The notes beneath the pieces were generated by a model, which did not search any database, was not told the DNA's origin, and saw only the letters and a list, made by a program, of their open reading frames with translations. This document shows positions 26,774 through 35,116 of a stretch of DNA of 64,000 nucleotides, one piece after another. Within the stretch, counting starts at the first letter, position 1. Every line of letters begins with the position of its first letter. The translations under genes and the position numbers were made by a program. The DNA lies in the sequence record ON529852.1; one strand, given 5' to 3'.

Positions 26774-26798
26774 GTAAAGGAATGCTGCGCGGTGTCAA
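26774..26798 (-). promoter_or_regulatory. conserved phage promoter repeat (class I, 1 nt shorter)
   Basis: TTGACA-CCGCGCAGC-ATTCCTTTAC. Confidence 0.75.
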
Positions 26799-27622
26799 CC
26801 CGGCGCGTCGCCGTAATCGCGTTCGATCGGTTCAGCGCCCGCCATAATGAACTCGGTGCGGTTGACGACGCGCTGGAGCGGCGGGACAGACAGACGGGTC
26901 ATGGAGGAGCGAACCACCGACGTGTCCTCAAGACGCGCCGGGCGCATGGCGGCGGGAATGCGGGCGGCCTCGGCCGGCGTCAGGGGCCGCTCGACCGTCT
27001 CCTTGCGCACGAACGTCCCAAGACGGAACGCCTCAGGGTAGTCGGCGAACACCACGCCCTTCTCGGCGATCATGTCGACCATCGCCTGGCGCCCCTTGCC
27101 ATGCATCTGGCTCGGCGAGTATTGCGCCCGGCACGCCATGGAGGCGGCGTTCTTCTGGCAGTCGAGGTTACGCCACAGGAACATGTTGGCGGCTTCCCAC
27201 GGGTGGGGAAGCTGACAGACACGCGCGTCGAACGCCGGCAGGCGATCGTTGAACGGCTCCCAGTAGCGGATGGCGTGCGCCATGCGCGCGGCCGCCATCG
27301 ACGCCAGCACCGAGGTCATCTTGACGATCTTGCCGGAGAAGAAGATGTCGCTCTCGTAGTCGGGCGCCTCCCACACCAGGCTGATCTCGTCGGACTGGAC
27401 GTAGCCGATCTTGGCGTGGGTCTTGTCGACGAGATACTCCGCCACCACGATCATCGCCTCGGTCATGCGCGGGTCAAACGGCCGCTCCATGCCCTTGGTG
27501 AACTTGGAGAAGCCTCGGCCGTCGATGCGGGCGTAGACCGGCAGGGACGGGAAGAAGCGGCGCGCGGTCTCGCGTCGCTCGTAGTCCTTCATGCGGTCGC
27601 CGAGTTCGTCCTTGGTCGTCAT
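26795..27622 (-). CDS. tRNA(His) guanylyltransferase Thg1-like 3'-5' polymerase
   Basis: LGDRMKDYE, YARIDGRGFSKFT...PFD, GYVQSDEISL, FDARV, F.WRN.DC.KN motifs. Confidence 0.92.
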   Translation of the reverse strand: MTTKDELGDRMKDYERRETARRFFPSLPVYARIDGRGFSKFTKGMERPFDPRMTEAMIVVAEYLVDKTHAKIGYVQSDEISLVWEAPDYESDIFFSGKIVKMTSVLASMAAARMAHAIRYWEPFNDRLPAFDARVCQLPHPWEAANMFLWRNLDCQKNAASMACRAQYSPSQMHGKGRQAMVDMIAEKGVVFADYPEAFRLGTFVRKETVERPLTPAEAARIPAAMRPARLEDTSVVRSSMTRLSVPPLQRVVNRTEFIMAGAEPIERDYGDAPG

Positions 27623-30561: not shown

Positions 30562-31716
30562 TCAGCCGCCCGGCTCCAGGCGCACGCCGTCGAGCGCCTT
30601 CAACATGTCTTCACGGGTCGCGGTGTAGTCGCTCAAGGCCCAGGTCATCCGCGCCGCCATCAACCCGGCGCCGATCTCCTTGGGCTTGAACCCCTTCGCG
30701 ACGAAATCATCCCCATTGATGGGCAGCGTCGGGACGGACCAGGAAGAGACTTCGGTGAAGACGTCCGGGACCCCGGTCGCCCGCGCCCAGGCCTCGGCAT
30801 AGGCGAGCGAGGCTTTTTCGCACGCCAGGAGGTATTTCAGGTTCTTTAGGGACGGCGGGCTATACTGGCGGTTCTCCAGGAATTTCGCCAGAGCCGTCTC
30901 GGGATTCGACCAGCGCCAGCGTTTGGCGATCGGCGACCAGTTCTTGGCGAGCGCGCTCATCAGCACCACGGGATCGCGGGTGTGGACGTGCGCGATGTCC
31001 ATGCGTTCGGGCAAGACTTCGCCGGAGACCTCCAGATGATCCAGCAGGCCCAGGCGGCGCATTTCCCGCACCATGCGCGGCCCGCTGTCGTGGGCCACCA
31101 CCTTCTTCATCTCGACCCAGATACGTTCACCGGAAATGGCGCGCAGACCGTGACCGAACAGGGCGCAGGCCGCCGCCGCCGCCGGGTCAAGGGGACCCCG
31201 TCCATAACGACCGTGGAAGCGGAAGAAGCGCAGGATGCGCAGGTGGTCTTCCTCAATCCGCTCGGAGGCGTCGCCGACAAAGCGGACCACGCCGGCGTTC
31301 AGATCGTCCGCGCCCCCGTAGGGGTCGATCAGGACGCCCTGGAAGGTCATCGCCATGGCGTTGATCGTCAGATCGCGTCGCGCCAGGTCTTCATGCAGGT
31401 CGCGGGTGAAGGCGACCGTGGCGTGGCGGCCGTCGTGCTCCGATTCCGTGCGCAGGGTGGTGATCTCGTAGGGCTCGTCGCCGATCACGACCGTCAACGT
31501 GCCGAACTCGATCCCCGTCGGATAACAGATGAGGCCCAGACTTTCGTAGATGGCCTGCTGTTCGTCGGGCGTGGCGTCCGTGCACAGGTCGACATCCTTG
31601 TGCGCCTCGCCCCGCAAGGCGTCGCGCACACAGCCGCCGACGAACCACAGACTGAAGCCGCGCTCCTGGTAGGCGCGTTCGACCGCCGCCAGTTCTGGGG
31701 TGACCGGCATACGCAT
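30562..31716 (-). CDS. cca: class II CCA-adding tRNA nucleotidyltransferase
   Basis: VGGCVRD, DVDLCT, EITTLR, DGRH loop, DLARRDLTINAM, EDHLRILRFFRF; no HD domain. Confidence 0.88.
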   Translation of the reverse strand: MRMPVTPELAAVERAYQERGFSLWFVGGCVRDALRGEAHKDVDLCTDATPDEQQAIYESLGLICYPTGIEFGTLTVVIGDEPYEITTLRTESEHDGRHATVAFTRDLHEDLARRDLTINAMAMTFQGVLIDPYGGADDLNAGVVRFVGDASERIEEDHLRILRFFRFHGRYGRGPLDPAAAAACALFGHGLRAISGERIWVEMKKVVAHDSGPRMVREMRRLGLLDHLEVSGEVLPERMDIAHVHTRDPVVLMSALAKNWSPIAKRWRWSNPETALAKFLENRQYSPPSLKNLKYLLACEKASLAYAEAWARATGVPDVFTEVSSWSVPTLPINGDDFVAKGFKPKEIGAGLMAARMTWALSDYTATREDMLKALDGVRLEPGG

Positions 31717-33290: not shown

Positions 33291-33557
33291 TCAGTCTACT
33301 CCGTAGGTGCCGGGTTCATGGATGTGCATCTCGCATCCATGCAGACCCACGATTCGCTGCGCCGCTTCAAGTGGCATGCCGGTGTTTTCCACGCAATATC
33401 CCAGCAGACGCCCCACCAGGTTCTGCAAATCACTGATGTCGGCCGCCATCCGATCGAGCGTGTCGCTCCGGTCGTTCGGGTCCGGCGTCAGCGCGTCGTC
33501 CACCGCCATCACCTGGGGCGCGCGGCCGGACCATTTGCGGGTGACGACGACCTTCAT
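33291..33557 (-). CDS. hypothetical protein
   Basis: Start moved to MKVVVT (ATGA overlap). Confidence 0.65.
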   Translation of the reverse strand: MKVVVTRKWSGRAPQVMAVDDALTPDPNDRSDTLDRMAADISDLQNLVGRLLGYCVENTGMPLEAAQRIVGLHGCEMHIHEPGTYGVD

Positions 33558-33850
33558 CGGGCGGCCCCCTCGGCGCGGCGCAGCAGGGCGATGACCTCGT
33601 CCTGGGTGCGGGCCTCGTCGTTCAGCCAATCCGTCAGCGACCACACCTCCAGAATGTATCCCAGAAACCAGACGGCTTCCTGGTAGAGGCCTGAGATGCT
33701 CTGTTCATCCGTCTGAACAGGGTAGTGTTGCCGCGCCGCGTGATAGACGGCGGCGTGCAGGCTTAACCCCGCGCCATCCGGGGCGAACCGGGGCGGCTTC
33801 CAGACAGACGCCGTGAGCATGTTGGCGGCCAGATCGTACACGCTATGCAC
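33554..33850 (-). CDS. hypothetical protein
   Basis: C-terminal [16 protein letters not shown] resembles the end of 25903-26352. Confidence 0.65.
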
Positions 33851-34790
33851 AGGACGTTTCCTTCAAGCCCGCCAGCGCCTCCGGCTCCAGGAACATGCCG
33901 CACGACGCCTTCACGTCCAGCCCCACACGGGGCACGATGCGCGATTTCGGCGCGTCGAAGGCCGTCGCCAGCTTGGCGGTCAGGTAGGCCAGGTCGCGCT
34001 CGTCGGGCTCGACCCCCTGGGCGGGACTGTATGGATTGTAGCGCACGCAGTTGAAACGGGTCTTGAGCCCGCGATCCTTCACCGCCTGGATGATCTCGTC
34101 GACGGTGTCTTCGTCGTCGTTCTGGCCCTTGATGAAGGACCAGTGCAGGACGATTTCGCCGGGCTCTCGGCCGTAGTCCGGGGCCGTGCGTTGGAACTCC
34201 GCCAGCATGTCCAGGGCCGTATTCGGGTCCATCGCCTTGGGCAGCCAGCGCTTCCGGAACGCGGGGCGCATCGAATAGAGGCTGTAGTAGATGTTGAGGC
34301 CAGGATGCGACGGCCCCAGCACATCCACCAGCGAGCGCCCCTCCAGGTCGCGGGGCATGATGGTGCTGTAGTTCAACTGCGCGCGCGGCACGCCGGCGAA
34401 CAACGCCTCCTCGCGCAGCGCCTTGAACAGCGCCCGATGCCCGCCGTTGAGGATGTCAGGGTTGGCGAAGGGCTCGCCCCGCGCCATGAAATTGAAGTTG
34501 ACGAATTGGGGCTCGTCGTCGACCGCTCGCTCGACCTTGTAGCGCGCCAACACCTGTCGCGCCTGGTCCAGATAGTCCCCATGGCGCGCGGGCGTCATCA
34601 TGGTCTGACCAGTCTGGGTCAGGTGACACATCCGGCAGGCCCTGTCACAGCCGGAATGGCTGGACAGGTAGACGATGAAGTAGGCGTCGGCGCGGCGCAC
34701 GAAGCGGCACTCGAAGGCGCCCCCGTCCTCGGTTTTGAGGACGTGGTTGACCGAGGCGTCCTGGGTCGAGACGAGAGTCTCGTAGGTCAC
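33843..34790 (-). CDS. RlmN/Cfr-like radical SAM protein (divergent)
   Basis: [14 protein letters not shown] (CxxxCxxC), FMARGEP, YSLYS, GQND, YNP, C-terminal ASCGMF align with RlmN motifs. Confidence 0.85.
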
Positions 34791-35116
34791 GACTGGCCCA
34801 TCCGATCCACGCCTGTCACGCGATAAGCCTGGGCCACGATCCGCGAGCCCTTCGGCGGGGTCGCGGGGGCTGAGGCCGTCAGGCTGCTGCGGTTCAAGGC
34901 GTCAATGAAGGCCTCGACCTCCTCCGCCGGCATCTCCACCAGGACTTCGCGCATCTCCTGGAAGCGCAGCTTCACGGTCGGGATGTTGCTGTTGGGGCAG
35001 ACCTGTTGCAGGCGCGTATCGCCGGCGGCGTCCGTTCCGCGACAGTGGATGCAGATTTCGTCATACAGGGACGAATCCGAGAAGCGGGTCTCGTGCCCCA
35101 GGCTCTCAAACGACAT
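34787..35116 (-). CDS. hypothetical protein
   Basis: CIHC...C motif. Confidence 0.65.

Follow-up and report, generated by a model that had tools for sequence, protein, structure and literature searches.

A clade of RlmN/Cfr-like radical SAM proteins with tyrosine at the resolving cysteine position, carried mostly by jumbo phages

Background

Whether a radical S-adenosylmethionine (SAM) enzyme of the RlmN/Cfr type can act without the second of its conserved cysteines, and if so on what substrate, is the question raised by a gene of a giant Brevundimonas phage belonging to the Dolichocephalovirinae. RlmN, a Class A radical SAM methylase, is the C2-methyl synthase of 23S rRNA A2503 and tRNA A37, and Cfr is the C8-methyl synthase of 23S rRNA A2503. 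The gene, whose product is here termed P0001, lies on the minus strand of a 64-kb stretch of sequence record ON529852.1, referred to below as the window. A sequence-only reading of this stretch had placed a tyrosine of P0001 at the position of RlmN residue C118, and suggested that the enzyme might resolve its covalent intermediate through another residue, perform different chemistry or deliberately cross-link itself to rRNA or tRNA.

In RlmN, C355 is methylated by SAM once deprotonated by E105, and a methylene radical then adds to C2 or C8 of the base to form a covalent adduct, for the resolution of which C118 (C105 in Cfr) is indispensable (PMC9692996). C118A RlmN and the matching Cfr mutant pile up the cross-linked species (PMC9692996; PDB 5hr6, 5hr7). 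The premise that C118 serves to form a disulfide is dated: electron paramagnetic resonance, the structure of a tRNA complex and combined quantum mechanics/molecular mechanics calculations now favour its acting as a general base, deprotonation triggering homolytic C-S cleavage and leaving a thiyl radical that is stabilised near M176 before being reduced by an unidentified one-electron source (PMC9692996). Opinion remains divided on whether the second cysteine serves as disulfide partner, base or radical sink (PMC9692996).

A family of this size, maintained with tyrosine in place of the cysteine, allows the requirement at this position to be tested directly. If such enzymes turn over, the disulfide would not be needed, and a tyrosine proton and radical relay would be a solution new to enzymes of this type. 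For the study of phages, the family would amount to an uncharacterised nucleic-acid-modifying enzyme spread widely among jumbo phages, with chimalliviruses, the CcrColossus/Brevundimonas group and 400-kb megaphages among its carriers. The interest for both radical SAM enzymology and jumbo-phage tRNA biology is real, with the function described below being a predicted one.

Results and discussion

The phage gene and its motifs

The strings on which the assignment of P0001 depends were all confirmed in its translation: AFEC (E27 and C28), a 15-residue stretch bearing Y41 and the cysteines C48, C52 and C55, FMARGEP (102-107) and ASCGMF (C297). The gene and its principal residues are located as follows, the codons of Glu27, Tyr41 and the three cluster cysteines having been checked.

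33843-34790, minus strand: radical SAM gene encoding P0001 (315 aa), with a GTG start and its stop codon at 33843-33845; RlmN/Cfr-like, Tyr-type clade, phrog_27142
34710-34712, minus strand: Glu27, counterpart of RlmN E105, which is the base acting on the methyl-carrier cysteine
34668-34670, minus strand: Tyr41, at the resolving cysteine position (RlmN C118, Cfr C105)
34626-34649, minus strand: CxxxCxxC (C48, C52, C55), ligands of the radical SAM [4Fe-4S] cluster
34470-34487, minus strand: M102-A-R104-G-E-P107, counterpart of RlmN M-G-M176-G-E-P, with Arg104 for Met176
33900-33902, minus strand: Cys297, equivalent of the methyl-carrier cysteine (RlmN C355, Cfr C338), in a mobile C-terminal loop modelled with lower confidence

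Family assignment and register against RlmN and Cfr

The Pfam Radical_SAM model (PF04055) matches residues 45-227 of P0001 below threshold, at 17 bits. The best NCBIfam models are those of RlmN and Cfr, with scores of 39.2 bits against a cutoff of 290 for TIGR00048, in which the match begins at profile position 76, and of 30.8 against 550 and 30.3 against 530 for the Cfr equivalogs TIGR04432 and NF000424, respectively. Residues 2-302 align with positions 5-300 of the 300-position profile of phrog_27142 ('Fe-S-cluster redox domain-containing') with an E value of 3.2e-100. A search of PDB sequences with the single sequence returned only noise; a profile of 69 family members gave significant matches only to Cfr (9p0p, E 9e-16) and to RlmN structures (E 2-6e-9), including wild-type E. 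coli RlmN (3rf9, E 4e-9), with the C118A mutants 4pl1 and 5hr6 also aligned.

These profile alignments, ungapped around the cluster motif, set Tyr41 opposite C118 of RlmN (Ala in 4pl1 and 5hr6) and C105 of Cfr, Glu27 opposite RlmN E105 and Cfr E91, and Cys297 opposite RlmN C355 (within AACGQL) and Cfr C338. Likewise, M102-A-R104-G-E-P falls opposite M-G-M176-G-E-P of RlmN and M155-G-M157-G-E of Cfr. The Y-x6-C spacing of P0001 is the same as the C-x6-C spacing found in all 37 RlmN-type proteins drawn from 46 cellular genomes.

An AlphaFold2 model generated from the 69-member alignment has a mean predicted local distance difference test (pLDDT) score of 92.4 and a predicted template modelling score of 0.90. 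The pLDDT drops to 72 at residues 291-300, the loop bearing Cys297, which fits the mobility described for the C355 loop of RlmN (PMC9692996). Residues 1-303 of the model superpose on RlmN residues 80-361 (Z 26.4, root mean square deviation 2.9 Å over 274 residues); both Foldseek and VIA-align rank RlmN top, with Cfr at Z 18.1 and other radical SAM enzymes at 15.3 or below. As the alignment starts only at residue 80 of RlmN, and at residue 66 of Cfr, P0001 is an RlmN/Cfr core without the N-terminal helical domain. The register proposed by the sequence-only reading is upheld by the profile alignments, which place Tyr41 on C118, and the model is RlmN-like.

P0001 shares with RlmN (3rf9, 3rfa, 5hr6, 5hr7) the core fold (Z 24-26), the CxxxCxxC motif, the E105-type glutamate, the G-E-P motif and a methyl-carrier cysteine on a mobile C-terminal loop, within the motif D-V-x-A-S-C-G-M-F. 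It is, however, only 14-17% identical to RlmN, has an invariant Tyr for C118 and Arg for M176, lacks the N-terminal helical domain of approximately 79 residues, and belongs to a family that in cells is an extra paralog and is otherwise carried mostly by jumbo phages. Cfr (9p0p) is the best match of the sequence profile and shares the catalytic architecture of P0001, C338 corresponding to C297 and E91 to E27; unlike Cfr, P0001 has Tyr41 for C105, a changed A2503 pocket, no N-terminal domain and no link to antibiotic resistance elements. Of the Class A features, P0001 thus retains the RlmN-type core fold, methyl-carrier cysteine, E105-type glutamate and radical SAM CxxxCxxC motif, while the second, resolving cysteine, the N-terminal helical domain and an equivalog-level score are missing. 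It is best classed apart from both families, in a Tyr-type clade within the RlmN/Cfr-like group of radical SAM enzymes.

Conservation of the tyrosine

Tyr41, Glu27, the three cluster cysteines and Cys297 are invariant in all 121 close relatives, and all of them are also invariant across diverse representatives 37-63% identical to P0001 (149 of 149, two of the 151 sequences in this set being truncated). Given this invariance, the tyrosine at the C118 position is not there by chance. Arg104 is Arg in 144 of the 151 diverse sequences. The alignment therefore agrees with the sequence-only reading in finding the methyl-carrier cysteine and the E105 equivalent retained, tyrosine at the C118 position and the MGMGEP motif altered to MARGEP, with Arg opposite M176.

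Only four cysteine columns are conserved in the family, namely the three cluster ligands and C297. By contrast, each of the 37 cellular sequences, whether canonical RlmN or RlmN-like paralog, has a cysteine in the column seven residues before the first cluster cysteine. The core of the sequence-only reading holds, in that resolution must proceed differently from RlmN when the resolving cysteine is missing, but the residue then suggested, the cysteine next to the glutamate, does not hold up as a substitute: the Cys28 column contains Ala, Ser, Cys or Thr across the family, which rules it out, and the obvious candidate is instead Tyr41 together with the near-invariant Arg104.

In a quick maximum-likelihood tree, the Tyr-type sequences form one clade with a Shimodaira-Hasegawa-like approximate likelihood ratio test (SH-aLRT) support of 98, parted by long branches, with which artefacts are possible, from RlmN and from cysteine-bearing paralogs. 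Two distant 'mini-RlmN' proteins of phages stand at its base, on long branches of their own.

L149:3911-4909, plus strand: Tunturiibacter phage Tunturi_5 gp170 (Cys-type)
L148:3863-4792, plus strand: Klebsiella phage 05F01 gp104 (Val-type)

Both resemble P0001 in being phage-borne, approximately 310-330 aa in length and in possession of a C-terminal S/A-C-G-M-F motif, and both differ in being only 21-22% identical to it: Tunturi_5 gp170 retains Cys in the C118 column, with G-V-G replacing A-R-G, whereas 05F01 gp104 has Val at the column, a Cys three residues further on and G-E-G for A-R-G. Hence Tyr41 and Arg104 change together, A-R-G being found in the Tyr clade and G-x-G in RlmN, Cfr and the Cys- and Val-type phage relatives.

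Codon comparisons of the phage gene gave ratios of nonsynonymous to synonymous substitution rates (dN/dS) of 0.15 against the Domovoi ortholog and 0.11 against that of Kikimora; a value of 0.46 against Marchewka was set aside, as the NG86 dS, which was below that of the closer Kikimora pair, was judged unreliable. The gene is under purifying selection. The invariant tyrosine, the linked Met-to-Arg change and the low dN/dS (0.11-0.15) speak for an active enzyme, rather than one that is crippled or merely cross-linking.

The extensions of longer family members have no Pfam match. One member carries an insertion: in P0027, a 491 aa protein from a JGI metagenome, the radical SAM protein is interrupted at residues 118-153 by an HNH endonuclease domain (PF01844/PF14279). 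Insertion of a homing endonuclease, or of an intein-like element, is a possible origin.

A predicted mechanism

The invariance of Glu27 and Cys297, the two residues peculiar to the ping-pong mechanism of Class A methyl synthases, argues that the methyl-cysteine half of the RlmN mechanism is kept, and the replacement of the resolving cysteine by an invariant tyrosine that the release step must differ. By analogy with the general-base role now favoured for C118, that role could be filled by a tyrosinate. In the scheme we infer, a first SAM would methylate Cys297, deprotonated by Glu27, and cleavage of a second at the [4Fe-4S] cluster would yield a 5'-deoxyadenosyl radical, which would take a hydrogen atom from methyl-Cys297. 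The resulting methylene radical would attack an sp2 carbon of a purine, most likely in a phage or host tRNA, so that enzyme and substrate become covalently joined. In its tyrosinate form, and possibly activated by Arg104, Tyr41 would then pull off the ring proton and so bring about C-S fragmentation, after which the protonated Tyr41 could quench the Cys297 thiyl radical through hydrogen atom transfer, making a second cysteine needless.

We consider the chances to be about even that P0001 is an active 'mini-RlmN' of a distinct clade, employing methyl-Cys297 chemistry with Tyr41 as base or relay and probably acting on tRNA. More doubtful is the wider proposal that an entire Class A-type clade turns over without the second cysteine, the tyrosine, paired with the Arg that replaces Met176, serving both as proton acceptor and as the hydrogen atom or electron relay by which the methyl-carrier thiyl radical is quenched, and that jumbo phages thereby mark tRNAs with a C-methyl or similar group, which might for example adjust the decoding done by their tRNA arrays or shield the tRNAs from host anticodon nucleases.

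Distribution of the clade

A word-indexed search found at least 2,438 clusters at 90% identity (E ≤ 0.001), and an exhaustive search matched 301 of the 50%-identity representatives at E ≤ 1e-30. The Tyr-type clade is mostly borne by jumbo phages. P0001 shares 99.7% identity with a protein of vB_BpoS-Kabachok and 52% with the homologs in CcrColossus and CcrPW, and carriers among phage records comprise Brevundimonas and Caulobacter jumbo phages and Pseudomonas chimalliviruses (201phi2-1, Phabio, Psa21, D6 and others). From IMG/VR, 69 loci were retrieved, most on contigs of 200-465 kb; a search of the ESM Atlas returned the family's own clusters only, the nearest of them approximately 75% viral. 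No description of this clade, or of a Tyr-for-Cys variant of RlmN or Cfr, was found in a full-text literature search.

A pattern scan, limited to one genome per species, identified 72 cellular loci, dispersed among Planctomycetota, Myxococcota, Pseudomonas megaplasmids of approximately 1 Mb, metagenome-assembled genomes of the candidate phyla radiation and, in small numbers, Alphaproteobacteria, Betaproteobacteria and Actinomycetota. As all five cellular genomes checked that encode a Tyr-type protein also have a canonical RlmN scoring above cutoff, the former is an extra paralog and not a replacement for RlmN; a Caulobacter control genome likewise has a canonical RlmN. Some public records label relatives 'ribosomal RNA large subunit methyltransferase N', and the names 'RlmN' and '23S rRNA methyltransferase' are probably wrong in detail for this family.

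A third kind of RlmN-like paralog is also present in some bacteria (L155, L156 and L160; genomes G010 and G007). These score 97-220 bits to TIGR00048, with matches that start near profile position 70-77, and keep both the C118-type and the C355-type cysteines.

Genomic neighbourhood and the likely substrate

The following genes neighbour that for P0001, and the latter two form part of the same strand block.

34787-35116, minus strand: 109-aa open reading frame (ORF), upstream, the stop codon of which overlaps the P0001 GTG start by 4 nt
33554-33850, minus strand: DUF6197 protein of 98 aa (PF19698, E 1.2e-9), downstream, overlapping the end of the P0001 gene by 8 nt
30562-31716, minus strand: CCA-adding tRNA nucleotidyltransferase (PolyA_pol, E 1.6e-31), 2.1 kb downstream
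26795-27622, minus strand: homolog of Thg1-like tRNA-His guanylyltransferase (PF04446, E 8.7e-25), 6.2 kb downstream

The 109-aa ORF has no family match. The overlap of the DUF6197 ORF with the radical SAM gene suggests translational coupling; both ORFs accompany the gene in close relatives only, that for DUF6197 not having been found beside other family members. The CCA-adding enzyme, annotated as such in phage Marchewka, is near the radical SAM gene in CcrColossus and CcrPW too.

Among the 69 viral loci, ARAGORN detected tRNA genes within 8 kb of the Tyr-type gene in 23, which represent seven of 20 sub-clades at 60% linkage, and within 1.5 kb in 15. All 176 of these neighbouring tRNAs share the gene's strand. 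At two loci (L101 and L125), arrays of 21-22 tRNAs enclose the gene. Four complete genomes (305-317 kb) have all their tRNAs in one array of approximately 7 kb, constituting around 2% of the genome, and the gene is found 0.4-1.2 kb past it; by our own arithmetic, approximately 7-8% of these genomes falls within 8 kb of a tRNA. A Thg1-like gene is present within 8 kb in two independent lineages, one being that of the window and the other comprising L092, L093, L094, L099 and L102, and RtcB occurs twice among nearest neighbours. When tRNA genes, Thg1 and the CCA-adding enzyme are pooled, nine of 21 viral sub-clades have a tRNA-related neighbour. On the basis of the tRNA arrays, Thg1, the CCA-adding enzyme and RtcB, tRNA of the phage, the host or both is ranked first and would be the most likely substrate, a prediction in which we have only moderate confidence. 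The frequent siting in tRNA arrays suggests that the tRNA epitranscriptome is under phage control.

Several observations weigh against this assignment. All-versus-all clustering of ORFs from 147 loci revealed no neighbour shared across phage lineages, and the lack of a conserved partner gene, combined with the loss of the N-terminal domain, leaves the means of RNA recognition unexplained. There is no tRNA gene in the window itself, and close relatives of the phage encode their 25-26 tRNAs elsewhere; in Domovoi, Kikimora, Marchewka and CcrColossus, the gene is separated by 40 kb or more from the tRNAs, of which there are 25-31; and a search of 201phi2-1 (316,674 bp) with RF00005 found no tRNA, although the phage has a Tyr-type gene. 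Neighbours involved in deoxynucleoside triphosphate (dNTP) metabolism and replication are as frequent as those involved in RNA repair: across 30 viral sub-clades, nearest neighbours include dCTP-deaminase-like proteins (two), ThyA, ThyX, ribonucleotide reductase, dUTPase and dCMP deaminase. Cellular loci have no tRNA link, the gene instead being accompanied by leucine-rich repeat (LRR) and sulfotransferase-like neighbours. The pocket, finally, was compared with the Cfr residues within 5 Å of A2503 in an AlphaFold3 model of Cfr with rRNA (bioRxiv 2025.09.18.677109), which map by alignment as Y97 to R33, W101 to Y37, S103 to I39, S153 to N100, M157 to R104, Q329 to R288 and R327 to V286. With three new arginines (R33, R104 and R288), the pocket is so heavily remodelled that the enzyme may act on a substrate, or at an atom, other than C2 or C8 of A2503.

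Alternative explanations

Some of these observations are the basis of a serious rival, in which the fold and the Cys/Glu machinery act on a free (deoxy)nucleotide or on phage DNA, as part of a nucleotide metabolism gene set. Such a substrate would suit a protein without the N-terminal domain of RlmN, and R33, R104 and R288, invariant or nearly so and located at the positions that surround the flipped adenine in the Cfr model, would suit a small molecule bearing phosphate. It would also accord with the dNTP metabolism genes among the nearest neighbours, with the NrdD/NrdG and phosphoribosyltransferase genes beside the Val-type homolog of Klebsiella phage 05F01, and with the presence of the gene in the tRNA-free 201phi2-1. 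It would nevertheless leave unexplained why several lineages have the gene placed tightly within tRNA arrays or at their end. To our knowledge, every characterised relative acts on structured RNA, and we know of no C-methyl-adenine modification of DNA in these phages; radical SAM methyl synthases are, moreover, slow for modification on a genome scale. A non-RNA substrate is on balance unlikely. Less probable again is radical chemistry that involves no methyl transfer, with hydrogen abstracted directly from a nucleic acid, Cys297 and Tyr41 acting as hydrogen donor and relay, and an outcome such as repair, isomerisation or reduction. A precedent is spore photoproduct lyase, a radical SAM enzyme directed at nucleic acid in which a conserved Cys and Tyr pair functions as hydrogen atom donor and radical relay, and both the remodelling of the pocket relative to Cfr and the scores far under the RlmN and Cfr equivalog cutoffs are compatible with a change of reaction. 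The lyase is an analogy only: its fold appears among the structural matches at Z 12.7, making it no close homolog, and it has neither a methyl-carrier loop nor methyl transfer. RlmN and Cfr are nearest to P0001 in sequence and in fold by a wide margin, and the combination of an invariant Glu27 beside Cys297 with an RlmN-type [AS]-C-G-[MQ]-[FL] loop is specific to the methyl-cysteine mechanism.

A single-turnover cross-linker, which would stay bound to host rRNA or tRNA as C118A RlmN does and so act as a host shut-off or abortive device, was among the suggestions of the sequence-only reading and now seems very improbable. The cross-links accumulated by C118A RlmN and the matching Cfr mutant (PMC9692996; PDB 5hr6, 5hr7) make it conceivable, and the host lineage, judging from the Caulobacter control, has its own RlmN, so that the phage need not supply 2-methyladenosine. 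Yet any residue in place of the cysteine would abolish resolution, and mere loss of that function would let the column drift, whereas it is Tyr in 149 of 149 sequences and co-varies with Arg104; the low dN/dS also disfavours deliberate cross-linking, as does the retention of the family in free-living bacteria and on megaplasmids alongside canonical RlmN, and neither a toxin-antitoxin-like context nor a defence context recognised by PADLOC was found. It is possible, as a caveat to this argument, that the tyrosine is kept just for base stacking. That P0001 is instead an ordinary ortholog of RlmN or Cfr or a decaying relic, its tyrosine being an artefact of alignment, has in its favour the public records naming relatives as rRNA methyltransferase N, but is scarcely credible: orthology is excluded by the scores (39 bits for RlmN, with a cutoff of 290, and 31 for Cfr, with a cutoff of 550), the ungapped Y-x6-C fixes the register, as do the alignments with wild-type and C118A chains alike, and the clade is monophyletic (SH-aLRT 98) and the gene under purifying selection.

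Cellular cassettes and other associations

In Planctomycetota and Myxococcota, an LRR protein of approximately 550 aa with a TIGR02996 (Gemmata 'repeat-companion') domain divergently adjoins the Tyr-type gene in 34 loci, and a Sulfotransfer_3-like P-loop protein joins it in 22 cellular loci, sometimes together with a sulfatase. Examples of this pairing, from loci L013-L071, are given below.

L043:5528-7168 and L043:4609-5460, both minus strand: LRR/sulfotransferase-like cassette
L054:5630-7204 and L054:4792-5607, both minus strand: LRR/sulfotransferase-like cassette

The LRR, sulfotransferase-like and Tyr-type genes form a conserved cassette in these two phyla. PADLOC found no match for P0001 or for the LRR or sulfotransferase-like neighbours, and no context resembling a toxin-antitoxin system was seen.

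Two further associations concern individual relatives. The gene for 05F01 gp104 adjoins, in addition to the NrdD/NrdG anaerobic ribonucleotide reductase and phosphoribosyltransferase genes, an ADP-ribosylation gene. On ENA contigs of up to 1.34 Mb (L002-L005), the gene for the family member P0112 is flanked on one side by Shufflon_N pilin-like genes and a trypsin-like protease, and on the other by a type I-F-variant CRISPR-Cas operon encoding Cas7fv-like and Cas3-like proteins and, in one contig, Cas1.

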